A stretch of DNA of 64,000 nt from Eutreptiella sp. 'Long Island Sound 2002' (Eukaryota > Protista > Euglenida): positions 171,554,001-171,618,000 of the forward strand of contig OZ038378.1 of assembly GCA_964036045.1 (NCBI GenBank), written 5' to 3'. The notes beneath the pieces were generated by a model that ran no database searches, was not told the DNA's origin, and saw nothing but the letters and a program-made list of their open reading frames with translations. Of this stretch, positions 9,001 to 63,000 are shown one piece after another. Numbering within the stretch: the stretch's first letter is position 1; every line of letters starts with the position of its first letter. The position numbers and the translations under genes were made by a program.

Positions 9001-12000
9001 TTCAATGGTGCATGCCTTGTTCCATGCGCCTTGCCTCGGTTGTGGAGAGCCCTCTCCAATCGTTCACAGTCCTTAGTCTGGCTGACATTGAAGCGCTGTC
9101 CCCCTTCGCCTTCCCTCGGGGCAGTGCAAGGCCGGGTGGTCCGCAAAGGCATGGAAACGACGGGCCAAACCATCGGTGTACGGTGCAATAGTGAAGGTCT
9201 TCGGGTTCTTTGCGCATGTCTGTGTATGACGCCGTGGGTGGGGGCCAGGGCGTGTTTGCGGATGAGAATGGAACGCCTGTTCATTGTCAAGGGCATCTCC
9301 ATTCTGCGAAGAGTCCTAAGGTGGCCCACAGCGACTCAGGGTGCTTCTCCGCCCGGTCCGCGAGTTCTGGGGGTGTGCGTCACCAACCCTGCCATTATTG
9401 CTGCCGCCCCCGCCTCGGCACATCAGCCTCTGCAGCCTGCAGCGCCCCTGTCTGTGGATGCATGCATTGCGCTCCCCTGATGCAGTGTGCGAGAGCCAAC
9501 CAATCGTTGCGTTCCTGTTCAGGGCTGGTGGGAAAACGAAGTGCCACTCTGTGTTGCCAACCCCAAAAAGTTCCGCAAAAAGCTGCACCAGTGGACCTCC
9601 TCCCCAAGCCCTCCCGCAGAGACCTCAGCCCCTAACACTAGTGAGGGCCCTGTCAAGTCCCCCACCTGGTGTGTCCCTTTGTTGCGTGTGCATGCTTGTG
9701 TCCCTCTGTCCGTTTGTGCCCGGGTGGTGTGCAGGGGCCCTGCAGAGGAGGTCTGTGAGAGAAGGCCCCACACAGTGCGCGCTGTGCGGCGGGAATGCCA
9801 CCTGTTGAGGGCTGTCATTTTACACTTGGTTACGCGTAAACTAGGCATAAATGTTTACGCGCGGACACGCAACCAGGCGTAAACGGTCACGTGTAACCAG
9901 GTGTAAAAGGTTTGTATTTGTGTCAGAGGTGAAGGTGGGGAAGGTGGTGTAGGAGGAACGTGCAGGGGGCTAGGTCATCAACAGGCAGGTGGATCATCTT
10001 AGATCACCTTGGAGGCAGACATTTTAGCTGAATGCACGTGAGAACAGGAAATTCAAGACATGTCATGCACAACCCCATGTCACACGCAACCATTGACCAC
10101 TCTTTGTCTGCCCCACCTGTGGCAACCCCCCCCCCCCCCCACACCACCCTGGTGAACGTTGATGTTGGAATGTTTGTGAGGAAGGGGTCTTATATCATTT
10201 CTTCCTGTCTACGAACGCCGAGAATGTCACCATTACATCGACATATGTGCACAGGTAAACGATGCTCTTGTTTTTGAGGATTGGGGCTGAAGGCTTTCCT
10301 TAATATTGTCCCTTCGCATCTACAACATGCTGACATCTAGACAGTATCTACAATTGGCTCTTTTGTGCAAGAGGCACATGCAAAAGGAATGGATGGGATG
10401 GGCTGGAAAGGGCTGGATGGGAGGATAGGGATGGGATGGGATGGGATGGGACGGGATGGCATGTGCCGATGAATGTTGGTGTCGGACTCCTGATTTCGTA
10501 ATGGCTGCCATTTACACGCAAACTGTTTACACCTGGCTACGCTTAAAAAAATATTTCTGCCTCGTTACACAAAAACAGGTGTAAACATTCGGGCTCCCTG
10601 TGTAGCCCTGTATAACAAGCTGTAAACATTTGCATATAAACCCGTAAATGTTTACAGGGCAACATGCATATTTTTGCGCAACCGTTTACACCAACTGTTA
10701 ACGCGTAAACATGTGTAAATGCACAGGGCTGCACCTGTTGGGGTCCCGTTGCAGAGATGTTACAGCTTGTGTTCTGATGTTTCCAATTCACCATGTTGTG
10801 TCCCGAATTCATGATTTTTGGGCACCAGGAGAGGTGTCCGCCAAGCCCAACTGCCAGGACCGTAATTTGCCCATTAGCGATTTACATGACACATTTCACA
10901 GGAACGGAAACCTGGTTGCCTGGCCAACTGTTTTGCTTGCACGACGCTGCAAACAATACTGCATGCCAGTGCACGGCTGAGTCAAGAAACCATTTCCCTC
11001 AGTGGTGGAGAGCACTCAACACTTCACCGTCTGGGAGTGCCCACACGCGAAGCCTGTAAGCTCTAGCAGGGCCGTCCTACGGCATGGAGGTAGAGCACCT
11101 TCCTGCTTCTGGGACCCTAACGCGGCAGGAGTTACGTAGCCATTTATCTCCTCCCCTTCCCCAACCTTTTTTTCCCTTTCCCCCCAACATGCATACCTCC
11201 AAATGATCAGCATGACCTGGCGATCACTTTGAGATATCTGTTGGGATCCGCCAGCACCCCAAATCCGGCCTTTGTCGGGTGAAAGTGAGGAGGTTTGGAG
11301 GGTTGGAAAAGGGCCTCCTGAGGGGGTACCCGGCATTTATGAGCTAAAATGATCCTCATGAGGTATGTATGATAGGAGGAACGCCTTCAGGCGCTCAGGG
11401 GGCTCGGGCCACCCAATTTCAAGCCAGGTCTCTCAGTCAAACCTCGGTGAGGAGTCGTGTCTCTGACCACGGAGAGCCCCCCCACGCCCCTGCACACCCC
11501 ACTGCCATGTGCTTTTCGTCTGCCCTGTTGTATTTCAACCCAGCGTTTTCTTGGTGTAGCACCCACCTGGCAGGAGGGGTGGATGCTTGCCTTTTCTGGA
11601 AAAGTTGGGGACCCCTTCGGTCCAGCCCCCGTCCCTCGTGTTGGGGGGGGGGGCATTAGTAGGAAAGTGCTGACTGGGTCCCCTCAATGTTTCTTTATTT
11701 TTTCCTAATGGTCAGTTGGCGGTTACCTCCTTGGCTGAGCCCATAGGCCAGGGCTGTGCGGCAGGTGAAGAAATGGGTGGCCCTCTTCACCCCCCCACCC
11801 CCACCGAGGCCTTGTGCCACCCCCCCCCCCCCCCTTTTCGCCTGTGGCAAAGAAAAGGCTTGGTTTCAACAGATTTCTGCGTTTATCTCCCATTTCCCTT
11901 TGCCCCTGATTTTCCCATCCCTCTCTTTGCAGGCCTGCGGTGCCTGAAACAGGTATCCACCTGCTGGAGCCTGACAGTGCGAGCCTGCGCAGCCAGCACA

Positions 12001-13388
12001 AGTACCGCAAACGGCAGCGGCAGGATGCAGAGGAGTGTCAGGCCCCCCCTGCTCTGGTCATGCCGGCGCAGTTCAATCGCGTGCTGGTGGATGCAGAGTG
12101 CTCTCATGATGGCAGTGTGAAGCACATCGGAAAGCTGATGGAGCAGGAGGGGAAGGGGCTGGCAAAATTGTATTGGAGCCAGGAAGGTGTGCCTTATGAT
12201 TGCCGTTGGCCGGTCGATGCCGTGGGGGGAGTGGCACCTTGACAAAGGCTGTATGACGCTTTGCTGATGACAAATCAATGCATAGGGTGTGGGTGGGGTT
12301 GGGTTTGAAGGGACTGTCTTCCTCAGCCCCTGCACCCACCAGGCGTGCCAGTGGAGTATCCGCTACAGAGTGCTCACAGGTCCAGGCCAGTGGCACGGCA
12401 GGAGAAGGGTACAGAGCACAGCAAGTAAGGGCCAGGAGGCGCATGATGCGATGGCAAGGCACATGATGCGGTGGGCTCCACTGGAGGCCTGAGCAGTGAA
12501 GGAGCGTTTTCGCAGTGGTGGGGACGGTTCTGGGCATATGCTAACAGTCGGTCTGAGAGGAAGGCTGATTGGTTTCAGGGGGAGTGTTGCGGCCCTGGGT
12601 CAGCATCTGGCAAGTGTTGACGCCCGCCGTTCTTGTGATCGGCCCGTTCGGGCACACTTTGGGCCAATTAGTTTTGCTCTCAATCTCAAGGACTGTGCCT
12701 TTTTCTTGTCCCAGATGCCAAACTTCAAGAGCTCTACGACCTCCAGTTCCGCCTCCTATGCAATGGTTATGATTTGCTGGCCCCAGGGGGTGCACTCGTG
12801 TATTGCACATGCAGTTTATCTGCTGCACAGAACGAGGGTGTTGTGGGCCGCTTTATGGACAAGCACAACGGGGCGTGCCTGGTTCCCCCGTTTGCAGGAG
12901 CATCCGGGTCTGTGCCGTCCAGTCACCCGGACATTTCGCATGCAAGCGACAGTGTCTCAAAGTCTGCAGGCCCATCCTCACCTGCTGTTTTACAGCAGCA
13001 GACGACGAACGCTGCGGTCGTGCCAGTACCGGGAAATGAGGATGAGAGCCAACGTGCAGGCAAGCCTGGGAACGTGTTTGGGAGCGGCATTGAGGATGGC
13101 AGCGGGGTTGGAAGCGAAAGTGGGAGTGGGAGTGGGAGTGGGGCATGGTGCATGATTGGTGACCAAGGAGAAATTTTGAAAAGGGGCGGAGTGAATCCAT
13201 TGCTTGCCATGGACACGGCCCATCTGCCGTTCAAAGAAGGATCGTTACCCCACACGATGTATTTCTCGCCGTCCGTGAGTGGCTGTTCAGGTCTATTTAT
13301 TGCCAAAATCCACAAGCCCCACAGGCCTCCGCATGTGCCGCCGCAGTCCCAGACAGGGACACCGCTGCAGTCCCAGTGTCAGTCGTAG
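1..13388 (+). CDS. NOL1/NOP2/Sun (RsmB/NSUN-family) RNA cytosine-C5 methyltransferase, 5'-incomplete; exons <1-111, 3735-3898, 4091-4174, 8201-8331, 9523-9668, 11933-12186, 12715-13388
   Basis: All introns are GT-AG and the exon phases match. The spliced protein reads PRFIRVNP..ELRTCFGSSLRPVAW|LPKGFFSL..VYGIDAASAAAVMAL..VLDICCAPG|GKTALIAD..VTG|VDISVQRL..RLVLGDGT..FNRVLVDAECSHDGS..LQFRLLCNGYDLLAPGGALVYCTCSLSAAQNEGVV..SGCSGLFIAKIHK. This contains SAM motif I, motif IV (DAEC) and motif VI (TCS). Confidence 0.9.
950..1800 (-). mobile_element. Decayed L1-like non-LTR retrotransposon fragment (RT C-terminus plus zf-RVT-like region) in methyltransferase intron 1
   Basis: Broken minus-strand frames read KELVFNLDEFLVLLAP (degenerate post-RT GGL-type motif) and LRIYLRAIPT..KCSFLTCLHPESVNMLYWQGP..W (like CxxC..ES.HL.W.C). 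Multiple stops and frameshifts. Confidence 0.45.
2803..3065. repeat. About 2.5 degenerate tandem copies of a ~110-120 bp unit
   Basis: Recurring ttgctattcaaag...catagat...aatgca(a/g)tggga(a/t)accatcaaa blocks at about 2807, 2850-2940 and 2950-3050. Confidence 0.55.
4245..6980 (+). mobile_element. 5'-truncated, frameshifted non-LTR (L1-like) retroelement: RT C-terminal region, CCHC-type zinc knuckle, RNase H; lies in methyltransferase intron 3
   Basis: ORF 4245-5030 (LFQEWVLPLFIY..LAMPPSAGGNHLPHP, RT thumb/GG-L-P motif). ORF 5127-5396 (WKKLAVGVRL..RCPVDGQMETSEHAVCFC, zf-RVT-like). ORF 5819-6829 is RNase H. Element boundaries are approximate. Confidence 0.75.
5819..6829 (+). CDS. Retroelement-encoded RNase H (RNase HI fold) with acidic/Pro-rich C-terminal extension; C-terminal part of the element's pol ORF
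   Basis: YPDGS..G.GVFFG..QTNIRGEL..PDCE..HRDLW..WLHTPLH...RNSRADHLA: the D-E-D-(H)-D catalytic set is recognisable. There is no ATG start, so this is probably not a standalone gene. Confidence 0.8.
   Translation: MYPDGSSEDHPVVGRVGGFGVFFGDERDTAAYIPLDEEQTNIRGELRASLHALERHRLGERSVICPDCELIVKGVLEWAQRWRRHNWTNTKGPMQHRDLWEQILTITERLGELVKWLHTPLHIEIPRNSRADHLADVGRQKSPLHGQISAHPRCQEEPEEEEWEEEPIEGWEGWEPEADDEAPSQPPPPLAGETATVHTIKTKWEGRADVSPGHPPLSPLWDIAVCTPTQQAKRPRLQTPLHLSLVCMPRPAGEEATPSSQAGAVTPYCVGIMRNTFHTPQSPMTPRVSMRLLDALKLVPMEESRELSLTPRSVESHTSTASTITCSTEGSQCYMP
7200..7321. repeat. Dispersed repeat family A ending in GTGCCAA plus a poly-C run
   Basis: agaggccaatag(g/a)cgccgccaaaggcaaacaa...gtgccaa(C)n occurs at 7252-7321 and 42269-42342. 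gagcctaat.cggaca.tgcaacctgacc is shared between 7206 and about 49664. Confidence 0.7.
9818..9908. mobile_element. 91-bp hairpin MITE-like element
   Basis: Inverted termini ttttacacttggttacgcgt (9818-9837) and acgtgtaaccaggtgtaaaa (9889-9908), 18/20 complementary. Confidence 0.65.
10509..10721. mobile_element. MITE-like element related to 9818-9908
   Basis: Termini catttacac / gtgtaaatg; internal tttacac/gtgtaaa motifs including tttacacctggctacgc. Confidence 0.5.
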
Positions 13389-16320
13389 CAGCAACGTGAG
13401 GAACAGTTCTGGGACTCCTCTTTATCTCTTTTGGATGCGACATACCGTCTACCGGTGCACCTCTCGATTTTATGTGTGCAGAACAGGAAGAGGACTGTGC
13501 GTGATTTCCCGCCCATGCACTGAAACGGCAACGCATGACAGAGAACGTCGCGTGGAGCCCCCCCCCCGCCCGGTAGTGTCTGAGCAATCCAGGGGTCGGG
13601 CTGTGATTGCATGGTCTTGGGATGTGATACCGTAATACGCAACACGAGGAGGCCTATGGAAATGCTCTCGACACCAGCTGCAGGCGTCCCAGTCGGCGCC
13701 CTCACCCTCGGGTGGACCCGGGCTGCAGCACGTTCCCCTGGAGCTGGTCTCAGGTGCACCTGTACCAGAGGGGGAGTGATTGCGTGGGGTTCCTGTCCGC
13801 TGTCCGCTGGTCCAGCGGCGATTCAAGGCCAACCGAGGAGCGCGCACCGAACCGATGCCGGGCCACCCGGACCACGAGGGTGCAACGGTGCTTGCCTTCC
13901 GTAGAACGGCGAGTGGCCTCTTTCCTATGAACACTGAATCTGCCCGGCGGCATCCACGAGTGATTGAGGTACCCACGTAACGGGCATGTCATGTGCTTGA
14001 GTTGGGCCGTCGCATCGGTGGAGGGGGCGCGACATGAGGATTCACAGACCGGGCGGACCGCATCCCGGCGATCCTCACCGCCCTCGTTCGTGGGCTCGCT
14101 CCGAGCGGAATTCGAGCGGTGTGGCCTGTTGTTGGACGCCGAGCTCCTCACAACGGGCCCGACCTTGCGCGCAGCAGAGGCCCGGTCCAGAGGTGGACCG
14201 CTCCGGTGCGGGGGCTGACCGGCCCGGACCAGCCCCTTCCGCTCCCCACAAGAAGACTTGGCATTGGACACCGGTTGTACCACAGACCTCTTTGCCTGAC
14301 TGGCCTCAATCTCCCGTCTTGGAGTGGGCTCCGCAGCGCGGGTCACAACAGGAGTGAGATGGCTGAGCCCAAAGCACCGGCGCCATCCGCAGGAGGTGCG
14401 CTTGGGCTCAGGGAGGGCCTAGGCCACGCCGGAGCCCAAGAGTCGGCCGAGTAGGCCACGCCGGGGCCCCGGTACAGCCCAAGAGTCACTGGAAGTCGCG
14501 GCAATTGCTGTTCGAGGCCGGACGACAGGAGCCTCAGAAGGGTGCCGTTGTGCGTACTGACAAGGGGAGGCACAGGCTTCCCCTCAGAAGCACCACCCAC
14601 TGCTGCGCCGCTGTTCCTGTGCACACGCTGGTGACGTGCTGGGCCCCCATGCGGCGGCATCCGGCTGATGGGGAAGGTGCTGCAACAACGCACACTTGGG
14701 GAGCACACATTGGTGTGGCCTATTGCAAGGCTAGCCATGCCTCCAAGACACTGCGATGTGTAGAAATCTGTGGCCAAGAGCAGAGCCGCCATCTGATCGT
14801 CGATACCATTTCATGCAGCGCTGCGGCATGGCTGTCACCCATTTTTGGTACAACAGGGATCATGCGGATAGAGTGTTTCGCAAGTAATGCGCCGCTTGTT
14901 CGACACGGTGCAGACTGCGCGCCAATCCCCCCCTCTGTGGACCTGGTGGATGCATCAAGTAGGTGCGTGAGGGCTGGGTCACCGGCTCAACAAGAGCAAC
15001 CTACAGTGAACCAACTTAATTTTTTTTTGCGCCGAGGCTTTCCCTCGTGAGTCCAGTGTTCAATTGCATGATACCGGACGAACCAGTTCTGGAACACCAG
15101 AATCAGGTGGACCAGGTCCTGTGGTTTGTGTGTGTCTTTGTGCAAGTGTGCCTGAGTGTTGTGAGTTGTTCAATGCAATGTACAAGACAGAGATGCGTAG
15201 GAATCACTCAGAAGGACCAGGACACGTGTCTTTTGTGGGTGCCTGCGTGCATATGTGGGTGGCAGGCCATTTTGCAGTTTGATTGACCTCGGGGCTGAGC
15301 AATGGTCCTTTGGCCTCAGGACATGTCCCTGTTTTGTTTGGGGCCTTTGTGTGAAGGACATGGGAGGTGAAGATGGAGCTGTGAATTGGGGGTTGGGGAG
15401 ATGCAAGAATAACAGTCCAAGAAAATCGGGGGCGGCTTCGTGCGACAGCATGCGCATCAATGCAAAGAGAAAAAGGCTGAAAGAGACATTTGGGCCGCCA
15501 GTTCCAGATGTGACCCACCTGCGCTCCACCTGAAGGATCAGGCACCTGGAAAATTGTGTCCAAGTGTGAACCTGAGCTGTGGGCTGGATAGAAGGTGGCT
15601 GTGTTTGTGTAAGCGGTGACAAGGCTCTGCCTTCTGCCTGCCTTTCAGCGATGAGAGCTGTGATGCATCAACCAAAGGAAGCGACCCAGGCTCTCAGGGG
15701 GCGCTGCTGTGCCCTGTTTGAATGCATCACCTTCACCAGTGACTTGCACTGCACCTGCTCATACGACGTTGTGGCCACAATTTCCGTGGGCGCGCCATTT
15801 ACACGTCAAGGAAGAACCTCCACATTTCTTCACGAGTGCCTGCCGCTCGCCCCTGCCACTGCCAAGAACATTGTGAAGAGGCTCCCAACCCTTTGATGAC
15901 CACCAGAAGTTACACCCAGAGTATCTGCTTTTGCAACCGCTCCTGAAAGTCTCCCCCCCGTCCCCACCACCTCTACCTCTTCAGCTATTGGCTGACCTTG
16001 AGGAGGATGAGTTGGTGCTGGTCTTGCCATGTGCATTGTGCATGCAAGGCAACAAGGAACGACAGAACACCCCAGAGTGCGACCGGTGCGGGGGTCAGCG
16101 ACACAAAAAAGCTCAGTCTTGGATGAGGAGGAGGTGCAGGTCAGTAATTGTTCAGTGGTGCAACATCTGCTCAACCCCCGAAATGTCGTTGGTAAGAGAA
16201 CACTGTCCATAACGCAGGCCTCGTTTTGCATCTGAACCAGGGGTTGCCATAAGGACGCTCAGCCTTTTTTTTTTTTTTTACTATGGCACCCTCTCTCTGA
16301 CATTTCAAGCTCAGCAGATC

Positions 16321-18361: not shown

Positions 18362-21300
18362 AATCCACACTTTGTCGCGTGGCCCCTTGAGTTGGGGTTA
18401 GGGACTCACAATCCACGCTTTGTTGCGTGGCCCCTTGAGTTGGGGTTAGGGACTCACAATCCACGTTTTTTTTGCGTGGCCCCTTGAAATGGGGTTAGGG
18501 ACTCGCAATCCACACTTTTTTGCGTGGCCCCTTGAGTTGGGGTTAGGGACTCACAATCCACGCTTTGTTGTGTGGCCCCTTGAGTTGGGGTTAGGGACTC
18601 GCAATCCACGCTTTTTTGCGTGGCCCCTTGAGTTGGGGTTAGGGACTCGCAATCCACGCTTTGTTGCGTGGCCCCTTGAGTTGGGGTTAGGGACTCACAA
18701 TCCACGTTTTTTTTTGCGTGGCCCCTTGAGTTGGGGTTAGGGACTCACAATCCACGCTTTGTTGCGTGGCCCCTTGAGTTGGGGTTAGGGACTCGCAATC
18801 CACACTTTTTTGCGTGGCCCCTTGAGTTGGGGTTAGGGACTCGCAATCCACGCTTTGTTGCGTGGCCCCTTGAGTTGGGGTTAGGGACTCGCAATCCACG
18901 CTTTTTTGCGTGGCCCTTTGAGTTGGGGTTAGGGACTCGCAATCCACGTTTTTTTTGCGTGGTTCCTTGAAATGGGGTTAGGGACTCACAATCCACGCTT
19001 TGTTGCGTGGCCCCTTGAGTTGGGGTTAGGGACTCGCAATCCACACTTTTTTGCGTGGCCCCTTGAGTTGGGGTTAGGGACTCACAATCCACGCTTTTTT
19101 GCGTGGCCCCTTGAGTTGGGGTTAGGGACTCGCAATCCACGCTTTTTTGCGTGGCCCCTTGAGTTGGGGTTAGGGACTCGCAATCCACGCTTTTTTGCGT
19201 GGCCCCTTGAGTTGGGGTTAGGGACTCACAATCCACGTTTTTTTTTGCGTGGCCCCTTGAAATGGGGTTAGGGACTCACAATCCACGCTTTGTTGCGTGG
19301 CCCCTTGAGTTGGGGTTAGGGACTCGCAATCCACACTTTTTTGCGTGGCCTCTTGAGTTGGGGTTAGGGACTCGCAATCCACGCTTTGTTGCGTGGCCCC
19401 TTGAGTTGGGGTTAGGGACTCGCAATCCACGCTTTTTTGCGTGGCCCCTTGAGTTGGGGTTAGGGACTCGCAATCCACGTTTTTTTCGCGTGGTTCCTTG
19501 AAATGGGGTTAGGGACTCGCAATCCACGCTTTGTTGCGTGGCCCCTTGAGTTGGGGTTAGGGACTCGCAATCCACGCTTTGTTGCGTGGCCCCTTGAGTT
19601 GGGGTTAGGGACTCGCAATCCACGCTTTGTTGCGTGGCCCCTTGAGTTGGGGTTAGGGACTCACAATCCACGTTTTTTTTGCGTGGCCCCTTGAAAGGGG
19701 GTTAGGGACTCACAATCCACGCTTTGTTGCGTGGCCCCTTGAGTTGGGGTTAGGGACTCGCAATCCACGCTTTGTTGCGTGGCCCTTTGAGTTGGGGTTA
19801 GGGACTCGCAATCCACGCTTTGTTGCGTGGCCCCTTGAGTTGGGGTTAGGGACTCACAATCCACGTTTTTTTTGCGTGGCCCCTTGAAATGGGGTTAGGG
19901 ACTCGCAATCCACGCTTTGTTGCGTGGCCCCTTGAGTTGGGGTTAGGGACTCGCAATCCACGCTTTGTTGCGTGGCCCCTTGAGTTGGGGTTAGGGACTC
20001 GCAATCCACGCTTTGTTGCGTGGCCCCTTGAGTTGGGGTTAGGGACTCACAATCCACGCTTTGTTGCGTGGCTCCTTGAAATGGGGTTAGGGACTCGCAA
20101 TCCACGCTTTTTTGCGTGGCCCCTTGAGTTGGGGTTAGGGACTCACAATCCATGTTTTTTTTGCGTGGCCCCTTGAAATGGGGTTAGGGACTTAGAAATC
20201 CACGCTTTGTTGCGTGGCCCCTTGAGTTGGGGTTAGGGACTCGCAATCCACGCTTTTTTGCGTGGCCCCTTGAGTTGGGGTTAGGGACTCGCAATCCACG
20301 CTTTTTTGCGTGGCCCCTTGAGTTGGGGTTAGGGACTCGCAATCCACGCTTTGTTGCGTGGCCCCTTGAGTTGGGGTTAGGGACTCGCAATCCACGCTTT
20401 TTTGCGTGGCCCCTTGAGTTGGGGTTAGGGACTCACAATCCACGTTTTTTTTGCGTGGCCCCTTGAAATGGGGTTAGGGACTCGCAATCCACGCTTTGTT
20501 GCGTGGCCCCTTGAGTTGGGGTTAGGGACTCGCAATCCACGCTTTGTTGCATGGCCCCTTGAGTTGGGGTTAGGGACTCGCAATCCACGCTTTTTTGCGT
20601 GGCCCCTTGAGTTGGGGTTAGGGACTCGCAATCCACGCTTTGTTGCGTGGCCCTTTGAGTTGGGGTTAGGGACTCGCAATCCACGCTTTTTTGCGTGGCC
20701 CCTTGAAATGGGGTTAGGGACTCGCAATCCACGCTTTGTTGCGTGGCCCTTTGAGTTGGGGTTAGGGACTCGCAATCCACGCTTTTTTGCGTGGCCCCTT
20801 GAAATGGGGTTAGGGACTCGCAATCCACACTTTGTTGCGTGGCCCCTTGAGTTGGGGTTAGGGACTCACAATCCACGCTTTGTTGTGTGGCCCTTTGAGT
20901 TGGGGTTAGGGACTCGCAATCCACGCTTTTTTGCGTGGCCCCTTGAAATGGGGTTAGGGACTCGCAATCCACGCTTTTTTGCGTGGCCCCTTGAGTTGGG
21001 GTTAGGGACTCGCAATCCACGCTTTGTTGCGTGGCCCTTTGAGTTGGGGTTAGGGACTCGCAATCCACGCTTTTTTGCGTGGCCCCTTGAAATGGGGTTA
21101 GGGACTCGCAATCCACGCTTTGTTGCGTGGCCCCTTGAGTTGGGGTTAGGGACTCGCAATCCACGCTTTGTTGCGTGGTCCCTTGAGTTGGGGTTAGGGA
21201 CTCGCAATCCACGCTTTGTTGCGTGGCCCCTTGAGTTGGGGTTAGGGACTCGCAATCCACGCTTTTTTGCGTGGCCCCTTGAAATGGGGTTAGGGACTCG

Positions 21301-22802
21301 CAATCCACGCTTTTTTGCGTGGCCCCTTGAGTTGGGGTTAGGGACTCGCAATCCACGCTTTGTTGCGTGGCCCTTTGAGTTGGGGTTAGGGACTCGCAAT
21401 CCACGCTTTTTTGCGTGGCCCCTTGAAATGGGGTTAGGGACTCGCAATCCACGCTTTGTTGCGTGGCCCCTTGAGTTGGGGTTAGGGACTCGCAATCCAC
21501 GCTTTGTTGCGTGGCCCCTTGAGTTGGGGTTAGGGACTCACAATCCACGTTTTTTTTGCGTGGCCCCTTGAAATGGGGTTAGGGACTCGCAATCCACGCT
21601 TTGTTGCGTGGCCCCTTGAGTTGGGGTTAGGGACTCGCAATCCACGCTTTGTTGCGTGGCCCCTTGAGTTGGGGTTAGGGACTCGCAATCCACGCTTTTT
21701 TGCGTGGCCCCTTGAGTTGGGGTTAGGGACTCGCAATCCACGCTTTGTTGCGTGGCCCTTTGAGTTGGGGTTAGGGACTCGCAATCCACGCTTTTTTGCG
21801 TGGCCCCTTGAAATGGGGTTAGGGACTCGCAATCCACGCTTTGTTGCGTGGCCCTTTGAGTTGGGGTTAGGGACTCGCAATCCACGCTTTTTTGCGTGGC
21901 CCCTTGAAATGGGGTTAGGGACTCGCAATCCACGCTTTTTTGCGTGGCCCCTTGAGTTGGGGTTAGGGACTCACAATCCACGCTTTGTTGCGTGGCCCTT
22001 TGAGTTGGGGTTAGGGACTCGCAATCCACGCTTTTTTGCGTGGCCCCTTGAAATGGGGTTAGGGACTCGCAATCCACGCTTTTTTGCGTGGCCCCTTGAG
22101 TTGGGGTTAGGGACTCGCAATCCACGCTTTGTTGCGTGGCCCTTTGAGTTGGGGTTAGGGACTCGCAATCCACGTTTTTTTGCGTGGCCCCTTGAAATGG
22201 GGTTAGGGACTCGCAATCCACGTTTTTTTTGCGTGGCCCCTTGAGTTGGGGTTAGGGACTCGCAATCCACGCTTTGTTGCGTGGCCCCTTGAGTTGGGGT
22301 TAGGGACTCACAATCCACGGTTTTTTTTGCGTGGCCCCTTGAGTTGGGGTTAGGGACTCGCAATCCACGCTTTTTTGCGTGGCCCCTTGAGTTGGGGTTA
22401 GGGACTCACAATCCACGTTTTTTTTGCGTGGCCCCTTGAAATGGGGTTAGGGACTCGCAATCCACGCTTTGTTGCGTGGTTCCTTGAGTTGGGGTTAGGG
22501 ACTCGCAATCCACGCTTTGTTGCATGGCCCCTTGAGTTGGGGTTAGGGACTCGCAATCCACGCTTTGTTGCGTGGCCCCTTGAGTTGGGGTTAGGGACTC
22601 GCAATCCACGCTTTGTTGCGTGGCCCTTTGAGTTGGGGTTAGGGACTCGCAATCCACGCTTTTTTGCGTGGCCCCTTGAGTTGGGGTTAGGGACTCGCAA
22701 TCCACGCTTTGTTGCGTGGCCCTTTGAGTTGGGGTTAGGGACTCGCAATCCACGCTTTTTTGCGTGGTCCCTTGAAATGGGGTTAGGGACTCGCAATCCA
22801 CG
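18362..22802. repeat. 48-bp tandem satellite, about 92 copies, containing the telomere-like GGGGTTAGGG
   Basis: Consensus gcgtggccccttgagttggggttagggactcgcaatccacgctttgtt; 16-aa periodicity in the ORF track; occasional 49-50 bp variants with a longer T-run. Confidence 0.97.
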
Positions 22803-38660: not shown

Positions 38661-39154
38661 GCGCGGTGCGCGTGTAGTGCAACTATTTGGGCGTTTGGCC
38701 GTACTACAAACCCATACTTTGAGATACTAGGGGCATAATTGTTGCCTCTAGCGTATGTTTTGACTTTGAATCCACGCTTTGTTGCGTGGCCCCTTGAGTT
38801 GGGGTTAGGGGCTCGCAATCCACGTTGTGTTGCGTGGCCCCTTGAGTTGGGGTTAGGGACTCGCAATCCACGGGGTGTTGCGTGGCCCCTTGAGTTGGGG
38901 TTAGGGACTCTCAATCCACACTTTGTTGTGTGGCCCCTTGAGTTGGGGTTAGGGACTCGCAATCCACGGGCTGTTGCGCGGCCCCTTGAGTTGGGGTTAG
39001 GGACTTGCAATCCACGCTTTTTTGCGTGGCCCCTTGAGTTGGGGTTAGGGACTCACAATCCACGCTTTGTTGCGTGGCCCTTTGAGTTGGGGTTAGGGAC
39101 TCGCAATCCACGCTTTGTTGCGTGGCCCCTTGAGTTGGGGTTAGGGACTCGCAA
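38661..39154 (+). mobile_element. Truncated copy of the satellite-bearing transposon: left-arm fragment plus 8 copies of the 48-bp unit
   Basis: 38676-38768 matches 17409-17500 (agtgca.ctatttgggcgt..cccatactttgagatactaggggcat..ttttgactt) and runs into the same unit at 38769-39154. Confidence 0.85.
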
Positions 39155-39367
39155 GATAAGATAAGATTCTTGAGATGTTGCTCCATGTACATGAGAATAG
39201 CATTGGGGTGCACCCCTTTGACCCTCAACTAGATGGTGTTCAATGGTGGATTAAGCGTTGCGGCGGATCTCGGTCAATGAGACTGCAAATTAGTTATATG
39301 GGTCTTGATGCCTACTGTGCCGAGGAGTTTTGGCTGAAGTCCCCCCCCCCCCCCCCCGTGTCCAACG

Positions 39368-39584
39368 TTTCCTCTACACGCTGCTGAGCACACCCCCATG
39401 CGAAAGGCGATATGCCTGACAGGGGATGACACGCAGGGGGGAGTAGGAAAGGTCGGGACAGTGATGCAGATAACAACTCGGCGTAGCTCAGTGGGTATAC
39501 CGCACCTCTTCTGTCCTGTGGAGGAGGGTTCGAACCCCGGGGGGGGATAGAGATCCACCGAACGTCCCGAAAACCCCTTTATGC

Positions 39585-39621
<37 letters not shown>

Positions 39622-40389
39622 GCGCAATGGGAGGAGGACCAGAGAGAAGAAGAGAGAGAGAGAGAGAGAGGGCAGGAGAGAGAGAGAGGGAGAGAGGGGG
39701 AGAGAGACCCACAGAGCAAGAGTCGGAGGCTAACCGGCACTGTGGAAGGGTGGTGGGTTCGAGCCGACCAGGGTGTGTGGGCAGCCATTGCAGCATAGAG
39801 CTGAACAGCTTAATGGTGAAACATCGGGACGCCTTTGCGCCCCCGGAGCACGGGCGTGACACGTCATTACGTGTCAGAAAGCCCGAGCACGACAGGGGCA
39901 GCGAGAGTGCGGCCCACGGGAGGGTGGTGGGTGCGAGTTGACTTGGATATGTGGGCGGCCAGCGCACACATGGTGTGGTACTGAACAGGTATGCGCCACA
40001 ATACAGCAATGCATCTGTTGAAGTGTCAAGCCACAAAAATTTTTGGTGCAACGTTGAGACGCCTTTGCGCCCCCAAAGGCGCCTTTGCGCCCCCGGAGTT
40101 CGGATATGACACGTCTTCACGTGTCAGAGAGCAAGAGCAAGACAGGGGCAGCAAGAGCAAGACCTGCAGGGCAAGGGTTAGAGACTAACCGGCACTGTGG
40201 GAGGGTGGTGGGTGCGAGCTGACCTCGATGTACAGATGGCCAAGGCCAAAGCACAGTCAGCAGCCACCTGGAGTGGTACAGAACTGGTCTGCGCTGCAGT
40301 GCAGCGAGGAAAAACACTGAACTATGTGGTTATGACCATGCGCCTGTGACACGGGGGCGTATGCGAGCCCAGTATCCGTTGCCTCATGG
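39368..40389 (+). mobile_element. Longest copy (1022 bp) of SINE-like family B with internal tRNA-like segment, (GA)n tract and internal repeats
   Basis: 12-bp TSD ccgtgtccaacg (39356-39367, 40390-40401). A-box tagctcagtgg 39484-39494 and B-box ggttcgaaccc 39527-39537. 3' end ...gtatccgttgcctcatgg is shared with 42521 and 61114. Confidence 0.8.
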
Positions 40390-40533
40390 CCGTGTCCAAC
40401 GAACACTGTGTCCAACGAACACTTCCCGTTCGGACCGTATTTTCTGGGGACCTAATTAATTTGGTACTTATTTAGGTACCAAACATCAGAACAGAGGTTT
40501 TAGGCTAATGTTGCGGTGAAATGAGGGGCTGTT

Positions 40534-42192
40534 GGGGGAACGTTAGCGCGGCGAGCGCGCGCCGGGCATCTTTTTTGACCCGTGCCCCACCGGTGGCCTT
40601 TTAGGGGGTGCACTAAGGGGGCGCACTTAGCGCAAAGCAGCTATTTGGGCGTCTGGCTGTACTAGAGACTGCCGCTTCTACTCGCGCCAAGAAGAGCCCG
40701 AAGCCCAGGGAGCACATTCAGCTTTTCCGCATGAAGCGGGACCGCAACAAAGGCTTCTACTCTGAAAAGTGTCAAGTGGAAGTCTCCATCGCATTCTGCT
40801 TTGAATGGGCTGGGTGTCTTGTGCCTAGGGATGTGTTACCGTGGATTCACAATATTGTCGCGCGCACCGAACACTGTGTCCAACGAACACTACCCGTTTG
40901 GACCGCATTTTTTGGGACATAATTATTCGTTGGACACGGGGGGGGGGGGTATGGGCACGAGGACATACTTCCGCGCGAGCATTTGTTTCGCTTCTTTTTC
41001 TTCTTGAAGGACACTCCTCCTTATGGGTGTGCGCATCTCCTCTCCGGAGCAAAGGGGTGCTCTGAGGATGGGGAAGTGTGCATCGTGTTCGTTCTTACTT
41101 GAATGGTGTTGTCGCCAAAATTCGATGGGTGGAAAGGTTGTCTCAATGGAACCATGTCCCACACTTTTCCTATTTTTTGACACATTATGTGGACAGCATG
41201 CCCATCGGTTGTATAGGAAGCATCCTTTGTGATGTCCTCTTCAATCTGAATTATGCGGGTTGCACATGTAAAGTAATGGTTGCCATTGACAGTCTTGGCA
41301 ACATTGTTTGGATTTGTCCGTTGGCCCCGGGGACATGGCGGATGTTCTCATTTGGGATCGCGAGGGGCCCAAAAGGTTAAAGGGACATTATATGGATTAT
41401 GAGATAGGCTCCATGGATGGTGCATATAACGGGCGCCTCCATGTGGTATGGCCCTTTATCGGTCGAAAGACTTTGACGGAGCGCCAAAAGGAATACATGT
41501 GCATGGTTTCTATAGGGCACGGAATGAGCACTTGTTTGCATGCATGTGGCATTGGGGCATTGTAAGGAACATATGGAGGGGATGCGGTACTAATTTGCAT
41601 GAGTACGTGCGTGTACTCTTGCATTTGCAGCAATTTTTGATTCGAAGACAAGTACGGTACCCTTCATATGGTCCATGGGAACATGTACCCGCACATGTAT
41701 GGGCCGCACCTACACAGGAGGACAATGATGATGAGGATGTTGTGGGTCACAATGGGGATGTATGTGCCCTTTGTTGCACCCAGTCTGACCCTGAGAAGAT
41801 GTCCATGTGTGACAAAAGTCAGTTGGAATATTGTACAGATTGCATTGACACACATACATGTGGCAATGTCACGGTGCTTTAATTCAGCAACTGTTCCATG
41901 TTCTGCACACAAGTTGCTCATCCTCATTTTGTACTTCTTGGACAATTGAACCGAAAGAAGGACATGTGTTGTTGAGAGTGGACATTTGGGGTTGCGACCA
42001 TCGCTGTTCATGGCTTTTCGCATTTTGCATGATGTCGTATGTGGAGGGAAGGTAGCTTGCATTTGTCTTCAACTGCGGTAGTTCGGGTGACCTGAATTTA
42101 GGGGCCTTTGGAAGGGGTGGGCCTGGGGTCTCTTCGGGGGGAACCTAGTGTAAAAGTAGCGCGCAATGCGCGCGCAGTGCAAGGGCTCCCCC
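40534..42192 (+). mobile_element. Decayed PIF/Harbinger-group transposon containing the transposase pseudogene
   Basis: Left end gggggaacgttagc followed by the 17309-type arm; right end gcaagggctccccc. The TSDs do not match (gtt/tga), so the two ends may come from different copies. Confidence 0.6.
40950..41882 (+). pseudogene. IS5/PIF-Harbinger-like DDE transposase pseudogene (HTH_Tnp_4-like + DDE_Tnp_4-like + C-terminal Zn finger)
   Basis: LPREHLFRFFFFLK (HTH region); YVDSMPI; KVMVAIDSLGNIVWICPLAPGT/ADVLIWD; MDGAY; LTERQKEY..YRARNEHLF (D-D-E); C-terminal CALCC..C..C..CTDCIDTHTC. At least three frameshifts. Confidence 0.8.
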
Positions 42193-42349
42193 TGATGCAA
42201 CCAAAACACGTTCAGACCCACAACCAAAACACGTTCAGGCCCACAGAGGATCAGAATGAGCAGTGGCGAGAGGCCAATAGACGCCGCCAAAGGCAAACAA
42301 TCAGATACCGGGGCCTTGTGCCAACCCCCCCCCCCCCCCCCCTCCTTTG

Positions 42350-42521
42350 ACCCAGATGTACAGACAGATGGCCAAGGCCAAAGCACAATCAAAAGCCACC
42401 TGGAGTGGTACAGAACTGTTCTGCGCTGCAGTTCAGCAAGGCAAAACACTGAACTGTGTGGTGATGACCATGCGCCTGTGACACGGGGGCGTATGCGAAC
42501 CCAGTATCCGTTGCCTCATGG
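42350..42521 (+). mobile_element. 5'-truncated copy of SINE-like family B (172 bp)
   Basis: Matches 40225-40389. TSD ccctcctttg (42340-42349) / cccccctttg (42522-42531), 9/10. Confidence 0.75.
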
Positions 42522-42790
42522 CCCCCCTTTGTAATACAACGTATTAATTTGGCACCTAATTTGATTCGCTACAAATGTAGTGCAGCCACATAAGACATGG
42601 GTTTGGTGACAAATTTGCCAGCTACATCGAGCCATGGACACATTCTTTGTGAGTGTTTGCCCACTTGAACCCACACAGCTCTGATTTTGGGGACATTTGT
42701 GCATTATCTTCCCTTTTCTAGCACCACCTCACCATGTTCATGGTACGTGCAAGCTACGGTGTTGTCTAAGCTACAATAGGCGCAGGGACC

Positions 42791-42975
42791 CCCCATTTCG
42801 AGGTCGCTGAATCCAAAAGTGCAAGAATTTTGCGAATCTGAGACAGTGGCATCGAGATACGGGGGGGGGGGTCCTAATGAGCGGGGGGGGTCCTAAACTC
42901 GTTAATAACCGCCCCACCGGCCAAATCTGAGTTGATATTCGGATTCAGCGACCTCAAAATAGGGGGGGGGGGGGG
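42791..42975. mobile_element. MITE with CCCC(T)ATTTYGAGGTCGCTGAATCC TIR
   Basis: ccccatttcgaggtcgctgaatcc (42791-42814) versus ggattcagcgacctcaaaatagggg (42941-42965). Confidence 0.75.
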
Positions 42976-43590: not shown

Positions 43591-44116
43591 CCCCCCCCCT
43601 ATTTTGAGGTCGCCCGATCGCGTGGTGACGTCCGATCTCACCGTTGGGGCCGTTCCTACGGAGTTTTTCAGCCCATTCCTAACGAGTTTTGGGGGGGGTC
43701 TAAAACTGGTATATTGGCTCAGAATTGGGCGAAACCACCATCAAAATCGTGTCTCCGACCCCGAAATAGGGGGTAATGTGTTCTCTGATTTCATTTTTAC
43801 CATCGGGAACAACCCCCCCCCCCCCATCCCGGTAGGATTTGCACACAGGCTGCAGGGGGCCATTTTGGGCACCCGTGGGAAAATCAAGGTACCCATCCAA
43901 ATCTGACAAGTCAGGTAACCCCATACCCTAATTTGAGGTCGCTGAGTACGAATCTGATGCCTGTTTTGCAAAATTTTACGATATGTTGAAGGAATTCCAC
44001 GAATACACGTTAAAAACGCACTCGTTAGGACTCTCCAAAACTCGTTAATATACGCCCACATCGTGACGTGGCGACCTCCCTTCGTAACGAGCGACCTCGA
44101 AATAGGGGGGGGGGGG
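43591..44116. mobile_element. 526-bp MITE of the same TIR family with TA TSD
   Basis: TA|ccccccccctattttgaggtcgc ... gcgacctcgaaatagggggggggggg|TA. Confidence 0.8.
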
Positions 44117-45125
44117 TATACTTTGTTTGTCATATGGGGCCACAATGCCGAAGAGCTATAGTTATGGGGTAAAAAAGGACTTTTTCGTAGCTATTACAAG
44201 GGGGGGGGGTACATGCACACGGAATTGTGGATTGCATATTGGGGTACAAGCATCGTTCCCTGGATGGATGAGTGCAGACTTCTAATTATGTAGTAGGCTG
44301 CACCTTCCTGCCTTCCATGCTGTTTATTGCCACCGACGGGATGCTCTGTTGCAAGCTGCACACAGCAGCCTCTACTGCACACCACTCTGCTGTGCCCAAC
44401 ATGAAGTACCCTCTGCAGTATCCTCAGCAGCGCTTTCTCTGCCTCCCCTCCCCCTTTCTATGTTGGAGATGGTCAGGAGGGTACCGGTACCCAAGTTGGT
44501 CCGAAGTGCACCTTTAAGTTTGCTCTTGGAGACAACGATGACGGGCTGATCTTGGATTCAAAGCTCAGTGGTTGCCGCCATGTGATTGTTGGGGCCCCTA
44601 AGAAGGTGTTGCACGCACCGTGTACGCAGTGTGTGCACACTTCTCAACGTTTTGGTATGTCTGTTGATATGCGCGCTGCCTTTTGCCACATTGTAGGCTC
44701 AAAGGTGTTGTGGTAAGGTGTGTGCGACGGGGTGCCTGCAACTGCATAGAAATCTCCTGCCACCTATTCATGCATGTTGTTGTGTCCCTCATGGTCATTT
44801 TTATTGTCCCTCAGCTTGGATTTACTCTGTCTTTGTCCTGGGTCACCCCTGGACATGTTTTCTACCATTGCATGAGTACCGGTGAGCGGGTTCCAGCCAT
44901 TCTGTTGGGTTCTTCACCACAGCCTAGGGACTTTTTGCGGATAAATATGAAGTTGGTGGAAAAGCAATTGTCCACCAGGCTGCCTTCAACCACTGTCGCA
45001 CTGTGCACACGTGCACACAGTGTGGCACCTTTTGGATGTTTCCGGAGATTTTACCTGCTGAAGCAGGCACCCAAAAACCACTATGGCAGGGGTTCCTAGA
45101 GGCTTATGAATGATTCCCAAAGGCC

Positions 45126-49168: not shown

Positions 49169-49375
49169 CCCCCCCCCCCCCCTTGTATAAGCTACGCCCT
49201 TGTCCAAGCTACAGTAGGTAGCTCCGCCGCGTGATACTTGCTGATGGAGGGCATAGGTCTGTCGGTGGGGACCTATTGCTGAACTTTCCACTGTTCTATG
49301 GCCAAGCTACAGTAGGCGTAGGGACCGTAATAATTCCGTACATTGGCGTAGCTTATACAAGGGGGGGGGGGGTGG
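49169..49375. mobile_element. 207-bp MITE with poly-C/poly-G termini
   Basis: (C)14-ttgtataagctacgcc and ggcgtagcttatacaa-(G)12 are exact inverted repeats; TA on both flanks (one T interrupts the G-run). Confidence 0.8.
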
Positions 49376-60000: not shown

Positions 60001-63000
60001 CCTGGAAAAGTGCCCATAACGTTGCCCGTGTTGGGGACCATGATATCGTAGGGCTTTTGCAGCCATTTGTCGCCTTCCCGCTATGGGAACCCTGATATGG
60101 ACCCCAACACCTCCTCCTTAACCACAGTGAAAGATGGGTTCCCAGTCCCAGTCCCGCGGTCGAAGATTCCCTCCCATGCTCTGCACGTTGAACCATGGAT
60201 GTATTCTGTGCTTGAGGCTGTTGAGGCGGTCTGGTCGCTTGAGGCTGCGGATAAAGTGCTTTCACATGCTGATCAGCACACTTATGACGATCACGCACAG
60301 GGGACAGCCTTTGAGCTTAATATTGTTGCGTGCCTGCAGGCAGTGTGCACAATCAGCATCGCACCGCTACCCCATGTACTCAGGTATACCGCCATCACCA
60401 GGCATTTTCACATCATGCGTCCAAAGAGCACGCATACCCGTTTGCTGTAGCAGGTGGTGGCTCAGACAACAAATTGGTATCGCCATGTGCACATGTAAGC
60501 GGGGCAGGGGTGGGGGTGGGGGCACCCACCCTCCATGCAAAAAAAAAAGGTCTGCTTTACCGGGGGGGGGGGGGGGGGGCTTCCCCTTGCGCCCTCGTGC
60601 GACGCCCCTCCCCCCCCTTCTGGGAGAATTTTAGGGGGGGGTGGACGTGTATAGATTACACCTGAGCGCCCTCCATGGCTGTTCCCCTCGGTTCAGGTCG
60701 CGTCCGAGGCCTCCAGGGAAGCAGACAGCATCTTGAACCACACCCTAAAGAACACCATGGCAGATGGTGCTGCGGAGATCGATATGTTCCTGTTGAAGTG
60801 CGCCTGCGACGAAACCGCCTGCGCTCCACTTCGCCGAGCCGTTCTGTCTCTGCGCAGAGGAATGCGGGCCTGCCGCCATCGCCAGGTGCTGCCCCAGGGC
60901 TAAGGAAGGGCCCATGCTACTCAATAAGATGCGCGCACCAGCGCCAGAGGCTATGGTTTGGTAGCACATATGGCACGGCCCAGTCCCCCCCCCCCCCTCC
61001 CCTTGTCTGGTTTGCGCTGCAGTGCAGCAAGGCAAAACATTGAACTGAGTGTGGTGATGACCATGCGCCTGTGACACGGGGGCGTATGCGAGCCCAGTAT
61101 CCGTTGCCTCATGGCCTCCCCTTGTCCTAACACGGGCTTGTCCAAACACGGCGACCCCGTGTTTCCGCATTTTTTTTGGAACCATCGTTTTTCGGTTCCA
61201 ATCCAATAGAGAATGTGGTTTGTAGCTTTGTGCGGGCTGCAGGAACGGCCAATATGGGTGTCAAAGTGTTATTGTAGGTGCGATTCCATGTGCTATTGTT
61301 TTCTGGGGTGTATGCTGGCCTGTTGCGCACCCTTTTGTAGTCATGAAGGGGAAGCGTTTGCTTATGTCTGCAACATGTGTTGCGTGGTACAGGGGGAGGG
61401 ATAATTTCGCCGGGGGAAAATTTCGCCACCCTTGAAATCCCCAAAGCTCCAAGTGCCATACGCCCAAATGACGGTGATAACACAACAAGACACGCCCCAG
61501 ACGGAGACTCCAAAATTGCAACACATCACCACAAAAAACAGGCCCCAGCCCCTCCAGCACCAATAGTACCGGATCAGCAGCACCAGATTCCATACATCTG
61601 CGCAAGAAACGGTGGGCTCAGGCGAGTTGGTAAGCGCTTGGCTCTTCTTAGGAAACACAATCCCTCTGCCGCGGTGGCAAAGGATGGAACTGTTCCGCCA
61701 AAAAATTCGCCAGGGGAAAATTTCGCCACCGTTCTTAACGGCGAAATTTTCCCCGCGAAATTCTCCCCTGGCAAAATTTTCCCTCCCCCTGTACGTGCTG
61801 CGCCGTAATACGGCTTGTCCGAACACGACAAGCCCGTGTTTCCGCACTTTTGCCCCCTGAACCAGAACCTGGCCCGCTTCAGGACGGGGGGGGAAGGCGA
61901 ATGGTGCACAGTGCTTCTCTTGGCGTATCTGGGCAGCATCGCTACTTGAGCTGCCGTGTCACATAACATGTCATCAATTCTCATGCTGCTGCCGCTGCTG
62001 CCGCTGCTGCTGCTGATGATGAACAGAAAGATGACCGTGATGAGGTTGAGGATGACACAGATGCACCCGTAAGACGTGAGTGCTGCATGGACTCACGGAC
62101 GAGAATTTGAAGTCGGAGCATTTTCCTCGCAGTTCAGGGATAGGCGCATGAGCGTCGTGCACTGTGGTTGTGGGAGGGTGTCGTTGCCTGGCATGACCAC
62201 GACTGCAATTAGTTGGACAGTGCGCGGACATGGGCGCAGAAGGCGCAGGAATCTTTTTCAGTTCTTACCGTCTCAAATGTCGGCTGCTTTGGAAGGAGGA
62301 GAATGATAGACTCATGCCAACATTTCTCCTCTCAAGCGTGTCTGCCGCACCCTCAAGCAATCAGGTGCCCCAATTAGCAGCGGCGGCTAAGGCAAGCCAT
62401 CTGGCATGCAGTTGTCAATGGAGCTGAGCTCCGTGAAACCGCACTTTAGCTGATACTGGATGCTTAGGTCTGTGCCCTGGTCGTTTTGCGCCTTCCTCAA
62501 ACCAATCTGCAAAGTCAGTGCTATGGGCGGGCGAATTCTTGGTCCTGTCCACACTTGCACGATGACTCACGCGGAGCGAGACATGGGGCAGGACTGCAGC
62601 ACGGCAACTGCAGCAAGGAGCAGGACTGCGGCGAGGCGCATCCGGCAGGACTGGTGCACCCCACGCATGTTACGAGTCGCACCCTGTGAGCCATGCTGCA
62701 ACCGTGCTGATTGTGTCCCGCAGTATCTTCGCTCCATTTGCATGCCCTGGACCATCCCCAGGCCTATCTGCAACTCGCCGCCCGCAAGTATGTCCGATCG
62801 GTGCGGCCGGTGGGCTTGGTGCATTTTGCCGATGAGCTGACGGCTGGCCGGCCGGATGTGCGGCTGCAGGTGAAGGACATCAGCGCGATTTTCGATCCCA
62901 TCCTCTGCAGCCTCATCCTGGACAATGCCATCAGCAATGCGTTCAAGCACGGCCACCCCGAGACTCCCAACGTCGAGATGGCCATTGAAAACATTTACCA

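Follow-up and report, generated by a model that had tools for sequence, protein, structure and literature searches.

What are the three short, tail-less repeats that each lie against a long run of C in the Eutreptiella genome, and why do they lie there? The window considered here is the whole stretch of 64,000 nucleotides that was analysed (contig OZ038378.1, positions 171,554,001 to 171,618,000, forward strand). An earlier note on this DNA had taken the repeats for a SINE-like retroposon that seeks out the poly-C ends of MITEs. Our analysis of the window and of the genome assembly leads to a different identity. The three repeats are best explained as 5′-truncated, dead-on-arrival tails of an 8.4-kb non-LTR retrotransposon (LINE) that inserts at the edge of long C runs, and we give this overall explanation a probability of about 0.85.

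The 18-mer GTATCCGTTGCCTCATGG has exactly three matches in the window, all on the forward strand and ending at positions 40389, 42521 and 61114, against a chance expectation of 0.06. The tail-less 3′ end attributed to all three copies (...GCCTCATGG) is thereby confirmed. Copy 1 (39368-40389, forward strand) represents the last 1022 nt of the 8.4-kb element, is colinear with full-length and 4.9-kb copies, and consists of 3′UTR only. Copies 2 (42350-42521) and 3 (61008-61114), likewise on the forward strand, are the last 172 and 107 nt of the same 3′UTR, and they match the final 158 and 108 nt of copy 1 colinearly, with approximately 93.5% identity. The landing tract of copy 1 is a C17 run (39341-39357, forward strand), which also forms the homopolymer cap at the left end of its host MITE; its target site duplication (TSD), CCGTGTCCAACG, is present at 39356-39367, where the first letters are the final two C of the run, and again at 40390-40401. 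Copy 2 landed at a C18 run (42325-42342) that is flanked by the fixed end of a repeat designated 'X' (...GGCCTTGTGCCAA) and by a TTTGTAATAC-type end, and its 5′ TSD CCCTCCTTTG (42340-42349) and 3′ TSD CCCCCCTTTG (42522-42531) differ by one mismatch (CCC[T/C]CCTTTG). Copy 3 adjoins a C13 run (60985-60997) and has the TSD CCTCCCCTTGTC at 60996-61007 and 61115-61126; the tracts and duplications of copies 2 and 3 are again given for the forward strand. On re-reading all three copies, the boundaries, the 10-12 bp duplications and the run lengths of 17, 18 and 13 C proved to be as first claimed, and each duplication starts 2-3 C inside the end of its 13-18 C run. Since C/G runs of at least 12 nt occur once per 4 kb in this genome, a random site would abut one in this register with a chance well below 0.1%. 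The run-abutting pattern of the window copies is not a product of chance.

The assembly (2.28 Gb, 2,317 contigs) has further copies of the last 120 nt that are 98-100% identical, with 1,669 preliminary candidates, and the exact 3′ 18-mer is found in 1,420 genomic copies (reversed control, 0). Copies range in length from 24 nt to 8.4 kb with a single 3′ end, and in many of those that were fetched the homology extends for kilobases upstream, past the start of copy 1. All of the 61 copies that were read end in CATGG (CATGC in one case), with the C's of the target directly after and no poly(A). The earlier attribution of the repeats to target-primed reverse transcription is supported by these data, as all of its hallmarks are present: a fixed 3′ end, variable 5′ truncation and TSDs of variable length (8-16 bp, median 12).

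The SINE identity, by contrast, is not borne out. The interior of copy 1 has a tRNA-looking stretch at about 39481-39545, with A-box- and B-box-looking words near 39486 and 39529, followed by a (GA)n tract (39585-39707), and it contains internal repeats of about 250 nt. ARAGORN and Rfam searches of copy 1 (Rfam also at E values up to 1) returned no tRNA and no other RNA family. Moreover, the 5′ ends of the copies do not pile up at the tRNA-looking stretch, but are scattered, with copy lengths ranging from 24 nt to the complete element. Without exception, the copies are colinear with the 3′UTR of a LINE that has its own AP-endonuclease, reverse transcriptase (RT) and RNase H, and the long ones run into ORF2; because ORF2 stops about 1.9 kb short of the 3′ end, all three window copies are pure 3′UTR. 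They share a 3′ tail with a LINE, as a SINE does with its partner, in the trivial sense that this tail comes from the LINE itself. Annotation of this genome should treat tail-less short repeats adjoining C runs as LINE tails and not as SINEs.

The LINE with the same 3′ end that the earlier note had expected to exist is thus the 8.4-kb parent itself, and in the choice between an AP-type and an RLE endonuclease its motifs indicate the AP type. Three full-length copies of about 8.4 kb were found (for example, 5203-13625, reverse strand of L050+L051). They comprise ORF1, an ORF2 for AP-endonuclease, RT, a zf-RVT zinc finger and RNase H, and a 3′UTR of about 1.9 kb; in those examined, ORF2 is divided between two frames that overlap. 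A Pfam scan of the regions upstream of the tails in the fetched copies identified RNase H, zf-RVT and RVT_1, the last with E values of about 9e-18 in two copies, while ORF1 and an N-terminal Exo_endo_phos domain were found in three full-length relatives with the same 3′ end. By sequence, the best relative of the RT among solved structures is human L1 ORF2p, followed by R2. The Exo_endo_phos match is borderline, at the Pfam cut-off (24.5-25 bits), and a PDB sequence search with the endonuclease domain alone gave no match, so that the AP-type assignment rests on the catalytic motifs. All of these are readable: N (QNINGF), E (QEPH), D-N (ADHN), D (RIDRIH) and SDH. The domain order (APE-RT-zf-RNase H) and the best match to L1 ORF2p suggest that the element is an AP-endonuclease non-LTR retrotransposon resembling the L1 group; it lacks the 3′ poly(A) of the L1 clade proper. 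A Penelope-like element, considered because a (C)n insertion bias has been published for such elements, was rejected, as Pfam gives only Exo_endo_phos, RVT_1, zf-RVT and RNase_H and the RT is L1-like.

The three full-length copies begin with CACTTTCTGAGTGTCTATTTTTTTTCG, which has been used as the spliced-leader primer for Euglena gracilis cDNA (PMC5654406). A junction between the last 19 nt of the spliced leader and the LINE 5′UTR occurs 316 times in the genome (with at most two mismatches), compared with 0 for the control. Given that full-length copies start with the host spliced leader, the template RNA was trans-spliced, and the leader itself marks the genome as that of a Euglena or a close relative. 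At the opposite end of the element, the last 120 nt are much better conserved between subfamilies than the remaining 3′UTR, and the consensus fold of this region predicts a single long closing helix. No covariation was found for the predicted fold, which is due to the copies being nearly identical.

A survey of genomic flanks and TSD lengths against C runs, which the earlier note had put forward as a way of telling a genuine target from random flanks, reveals that the flanks are far from random. Among the 1,420 copies, CATGG is followed by 2-7 C in 1,346 (95%), by no C in 20, by a single C in 32 and by at least 8 C in 22, such that at least two C are present at the 3′ junction in 96%. The 5′ side can be judged from a small sample of 27 junctions with readable TSDs, which comprise the three window copies, 12 copies picked by similarity, 10 of 20 taken in genome order (an unbiased set) and two full-length copies. 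Long runs are in clear excess here: 17 of these junctions lie at runs of 11-18 C, five at runs of 7-10 C and five at runs of 2-4 C. Relative to the number of such sites in the window, use of runs of at least 11 C exceeds that of CC or CCC about 1000-fold and that of runs of 4-6 about 200-fold. At every one of the 17 long runs, the TSD opens 2-6 C short of the run's end (P about 7e-9 under a uniform nick position). Most copies therefore occupy one kind of sequence in a fixed register, as in target-specific LINEs, with 22 of the 27 junctions at runs of at least 7 C. Nevertheless, about one third of the readable junctions have only 2-8 C, and a long run is thus preferred but not required. Even in low-C targets (L005, L026, L066, L018 and L056) the 5′ TSD opens with CC or CCC, demonstrating that the C's after CATGG are target sequence and not a tail.

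The runs existed before the LINE inserted. Genome-wide there are 562,105 C/G runs of at least 12 nt, roughly 400 times the LINE copy number and, by our own estimate, about 1000-fold above the prediction from base composition. The window alone contains 39 runs of at least 9 nt, with a bimodal length spectrum whose second mode is at 11-19. Outside the duplication, on the upstream side of the 5′ TSD, target-primed reverse transcription leaves no new sequence, and it is there that the runs are found. Furthermore, the uninterrupted form of the copy 1 target, C8+GTGTCCAACGAACAC, is found 172 times in the genome (control, 0). A search for the empty allele of a non-MITE insertion gave none, the flanks of L024 matching only L024 itself in the assembly. 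Clustering of the sequences that follow runs, which was intended to class the hosts as repeats, covered about 355 kb and 200 runs, and in this sparse sample almost all were singletons.

Some of the runs are supplied by MITEs with C(n)/G(n) caps. The host of copy 1 (39341-40949) is a MITE of about 590 bp, excluding the insert, with the ends C17-GTGTCCAACGAA and TTCGTTGGACAC-G12 and a subterminal repeat of about 55 nt at both ends; its G12 end carries no LINE. Complete elements bounded by C(n)...G(n) are present in the window at 39341-40949, 43591-44116 and 49169-49372, the second of which has TA/TA flanks, whereas those of the copy 1 host are not clean. A DNA-transposon end had been claimed downstream of all three copies. 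This is certain for copy 1 and plausible by end motif for copies 2 and 3, whose motifs (TTGTAAT.. and TTGTCC..) match those of complete C/G-capped elements in the window such as 49169-49372; no partner inverted end was found for either within 3 kb. Approximately 35 genomic copies could be followed downstream for at least 1.5 kb, and only two of them (copy 1 and L023) are in an element with a matching inverted end and a G run, which does not uphold MITE termini as the target. Among the remaining hosts are an (ATC)n microsatellite (L022) and DNA of no recognisable repeat character; most hosts are not recognisable MITEs. MITE ends are used on account of their C(n)/G(n) caps and not of the elements to which they belong; long C runs as such are targeted, at their 3′ edge. 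The three-of-three pattern at MITE termini in the window is real locally and follows from this run targeting. L013 has the upstream repeat seen at 39258-39294, with a run and another end motif breaking into it at another position, which implies that the run travels with the element. The 5′ junction of copy 1 is unique in the genome and, together with the 172 uninterrupted forms, indicates a single insertion into a pre-existing run and terminal inverted repeat (TIR), with no movement of the MITE since. The idea that the MITE serves as a vehicle, with copies that moved with the insert inside, consequently fails for copy 1.

Because the run and the 5′ TSD together rebuild the original target, the same run can be used again, and copies stack with the newest one next to the run. 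At L056, three LINE tails (17, 249 and 115 nt) with the common duplication CCCACTGCCTAG are found at one run. Similarly, L069 has a C13 run, then a 24-nt copy and then an older one of 79 nt, and the younger TSD contains the older one. A C23 locus has a full-length copy, its TSD and, behind these, a further copy headed by the spliced leader. The run and the junction survive each insertion.

These junctions are consistent with the following route of insertion. The AP-type endonuclease of the LINE would nick a G tract 2-7 nt in from its 5′ end, leaving 2-7 G (most often 3) on the priming side of the nick. The resulting ...GGG-3′ primer would start the cDNA at the 3′ end of the LINE RNA, possibly by pairing with a few C carried there. 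The other strand would be cut 8-16 bp downstream, giving a TSD that opens with CC(C), and the long C run would be left intact just upstream of the 5′ TSD. The earlier suggestion of a nick within G runs, possibly aided by CC/GG microhomology at the junction, agrees with this in that the nick falls in the G strand of the C/G run and the 3′ junction almost always has CC (96% of the 1,420 copies). The L1 endonuclease is known to cut at the junction of a homopolymer tract (TTTT/AA). By analogy with its action at T-tract/A junctions, the endonuclease of the euglenid LINE perhaps reads the end of the tract itself through the shape of the helix.

The register could also arise after the nick. If the endonuclease cut anywhere in a G tract, or after any GG, then trimming of the G primer, or its alignment on C's at the RNA end, might later set the number of C at 2-7. 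The final sequence would be identical by either route, the low-C targets have nothing constant except GG(G) before the nick, and at least 8 C are kept at the 3′ junction in 22 of the 1,420 copies, as well as at a C11 locus. However, such a route needs an extra step, in which as many as about 15 G would be removed down to a sharply defined point, and by itself it leaves the roughly 1000-fold per-site preference for long runs over CC/CCC unexplained. We therefore consider it unlikely, although by no means negligible. Far less credible is that the C run is made during insertion, with the reverse transcriptase or a repair polymerase adding it without a template. The narrow range of lengths upstream of the copies (11-18 C), which forms a separate mode in the run spectrum of the window, is what such an activity might produce. 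Yet the run is not part of the TSD and occupies a place to which target-primed reverse transcription contributes no sequence, 172 identical junctions of run and TIR exist without the LINE, the opposite end of the copy 1 MITE has a G12 of its own, and runs exceed LINE copies by about 400 to 1. We reject this origin of the run, chiefly on the first two of these grounds.

Selective retention has also been considered, wherein insertion is random and only the copies beside runs persist because these sites are safe havens. Runs are often inside other repeats, where insertions would be harmless, but selection cannot yield a junction that is precise to the nucleotide (2-7 C after 95% of copies), and many copies, with their last 120 nt 98-100% identical, are too young for much purging. 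It is about as improbable as the making of runs during insertion. Scarcely better placed is the combination with which the analysis began, namely a SINE that is mobilised in trans by a separate LINE and targets the poly-C tips of MITE inverted repeats as havens or vehicles. In its favor, all three window copies are found at C runs followed by motifs resembling transposon ends, as are L013, L006 and L023. This is outweighed by the colinearity of the copies with the LINE 3′UTR and, in the long ones, with ORF2, by the lack of a small-RNA head or of a 5′-end pile-up at the tRNA-looking stretch, by the run-associated hosts, most of which are not recognisable MITEs, and by the unique 5′ junction of copy 1, whose MITE did not move with its passenger. 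Insertion of a LINE at the edges of pre-existing C runs remains the explanation that we favor.

Known targets of site-specific LINEs are rDNA, small-RNA genes, microsatellites and one DNA transposon. Tx1L, for example, inserts into the Xenopus DNA transposon Tx1D, and microsatellite-specific families include Waldo, Mino, Kibi, Koshi and Dong. In the literature, 'transposons, microsatellites' are listed among LINE targets, and Tx1 and R1 are named as the AP-endonuclease clades with target specificity (PMC4640811). The euglenid LINE resembles LINEs of the Tx1 and R1 clades in its AP-endonuclease, its exact 3′ end without poly(A), its multicopy target of simple sequence or transposon DNA, and its head-to-tail stacks. 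Unlike them, it targets a mononucleotide tract and cuts at the edge rather than inside a repeat unit, so that only one flank is repeat. Its specificity also differs in being strong but not absolute.

A precedent for the tract itself comes from the Chlamys Penelope-like elements of green algae, which show a bias for insertion at (CA)n and (C)n (PMC8557442). The (C)n targets and the frequent tandem or partial copies are shared with the euglenid LINE, but the Chlamys elements have a GIY-YIG endonuclease and a telomerase-like RT, whereas the LINE has an AP-type endonuclease, an L1-like RT and RNase H. In addition, Chlamys TSDs are often unreadable as a result of insertion inside the repeat (PMC8557442), while those of the euglenid LINE are clean. 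The view that this target preference is undescribed therefore requires qualification, since a (C)n bias has been published for the Chlamys elements; for AP-endonuclease LINEs, the literature searched contained no report of such targeting of C tracts. Nor did it contain a report of Euglena LINEs or of spliced-leader heads on them.

With LINE-1 of humans and other mammals, the element has in common an ORF1 and an ORF2 with AP-endonuclease, RT and Cys-rich domain, as well as heavy 5′ truncation and variable TSDs. LINE-1 has a poly(A) tail and its T tract serves as the primer. The euglenid LINE, in contrast, is tail-less, appears to be primed by about three G, and has its long tract across the nick. 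It further differs from LINE-1 by the additional RNase H domain and the spliced-leader 5′ end.

An AP-endonuclease LINE that homes to the edge of C tracts would add a new type of target to those known, and one that is simple to test in vitro. Its endonuclease could also offer a handle on how DNA shape, rather than sequence, is read. In addition, a run-edge LINE could help to explain the more than 560,000 C/G runs of at least 12 nt, and the stacks of retroelements, in a 2.3-Gb euglenid genome. It is possible, although we put the chance somewhat below even, that C/G runs, as a separate length class of about 11-19 nt, serve as landing pads that the AP-endonuclease LINE reads and can use again without ever exhausting them. 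Run-capped MITEs would spread such pads and other retroposons that duplicate a whole run would multiply them, so that DNA transposons and unrelated classes of retroelements would be coupled through one homopolymer.

The LINE has also given rise to a shortened form. Two copies, L003 and L061, have one internal deletion in common, which joins the SDH region of the endonuclease to the (GA)n of the 3′UTR. They are a retrotransposed deletion derivative of the LINE and not a SINE.

Full-length copies of the 8.4-kb LINE begin at their 5′ end with the Euglena spliced leader, CACTTTCTGAGTGTCTATTTTTTTTCG, as is seen at three genomic loci outside the window (from L048:4505 onward; on the reverse strand of L050/L051, at position 5203 once the two are joined and reverse-complemented; and in L052/L053). 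Across the genome there are 316 junctions between the spliced leader and the LINE 5′UTR, and AG is absent upstream of this junction in the LINE DNA copy. ORF2 is divided into two overlapping frames of about 825 and 845 amino acids (L050:4257-9123 on the minus strand, and the equivalent region of L052), and the break falls inside the reverse transcriptase at an identical position in these two full-length copies, which are 97% identical. The break reflects a frameshift that is either inherited or programmed. A further form is represented at L003 and L061, where one common internal deletion fuses the SDH region of the endonuclease to the (GA)n tract of the 3′UTR. This form is a non-autonomous LINE derivative that has itself been retrotransposed. 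Within the 3′UTR lies a tRNA-looking stretch (window 39481-39545) carrying an A-box-like word, TAGCTCAGTGG, and a B-box-like word, GGTTCGAACCC; ARAGORN and Rfam made no call on this stretch.

A single run edge can hold two or three LINE copies, piled up with shared or nested target duplications. Such stacks are present at L056 (positions 2380-2990 of the oriented locus, reverse strand), at L069 and near position 11556 of L048 joined to L049. In these stacks the copy adjoining the run is the shortest and presumably the newest.

The runs themselves have a bimodal length distribution in the window: the number of C/G runs declines steadily from 2 to 10 nt, and a second mode of 33 runs in 64 kb lies at 11-19 nt. 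The whole genome contains 562,105 C/G runs of at least 12 nt. Long C/G runs are a separate class, and more than the product of slippage growth alone. Repeat ‘X’ (window 7150-7321, 11700-11834 and 42198-42342) terminates in ...GGCCTTGTGCCAA, followed directly by C14-C18. At L070 (locus positions of about 2690-2845), C14 and C15 flank a 22-nt X tail, and AACCAC follows both runs. Judged from this arrangement, X looks like a retroposon whose duplication spans the entire run. If the duplication does take in the whole C run, X insertion would multiply runs.

The window also contains short elements capped by C(n)...G(n), which fall into several families with differing end motifs (TATTTTGAGGTCGC, TTGTATAAGCTACGCC and TTGTAATAGCTACG), with elements at 43591-44116 (TA on each flank) and 49169-49372 and further sites at 42962-42975 and 44200-44209. 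Mini structures, in which C and G runs of 8-16 nt are separated by about 25 nt, C(n) preceding G(n), are found in the 3′ flanks of L014, L027 and L067, and may be either C/G-capped elements of which very little is left or remnants of excision. An identical 48-bp satellite containing GGGTTAGGG is present at two window sites, with 92 units at 18362-22802 and 8 units at 38769-39154, the latter lying 190 bp upstream of C17, the landing tract of the longest LINE tail in the window.
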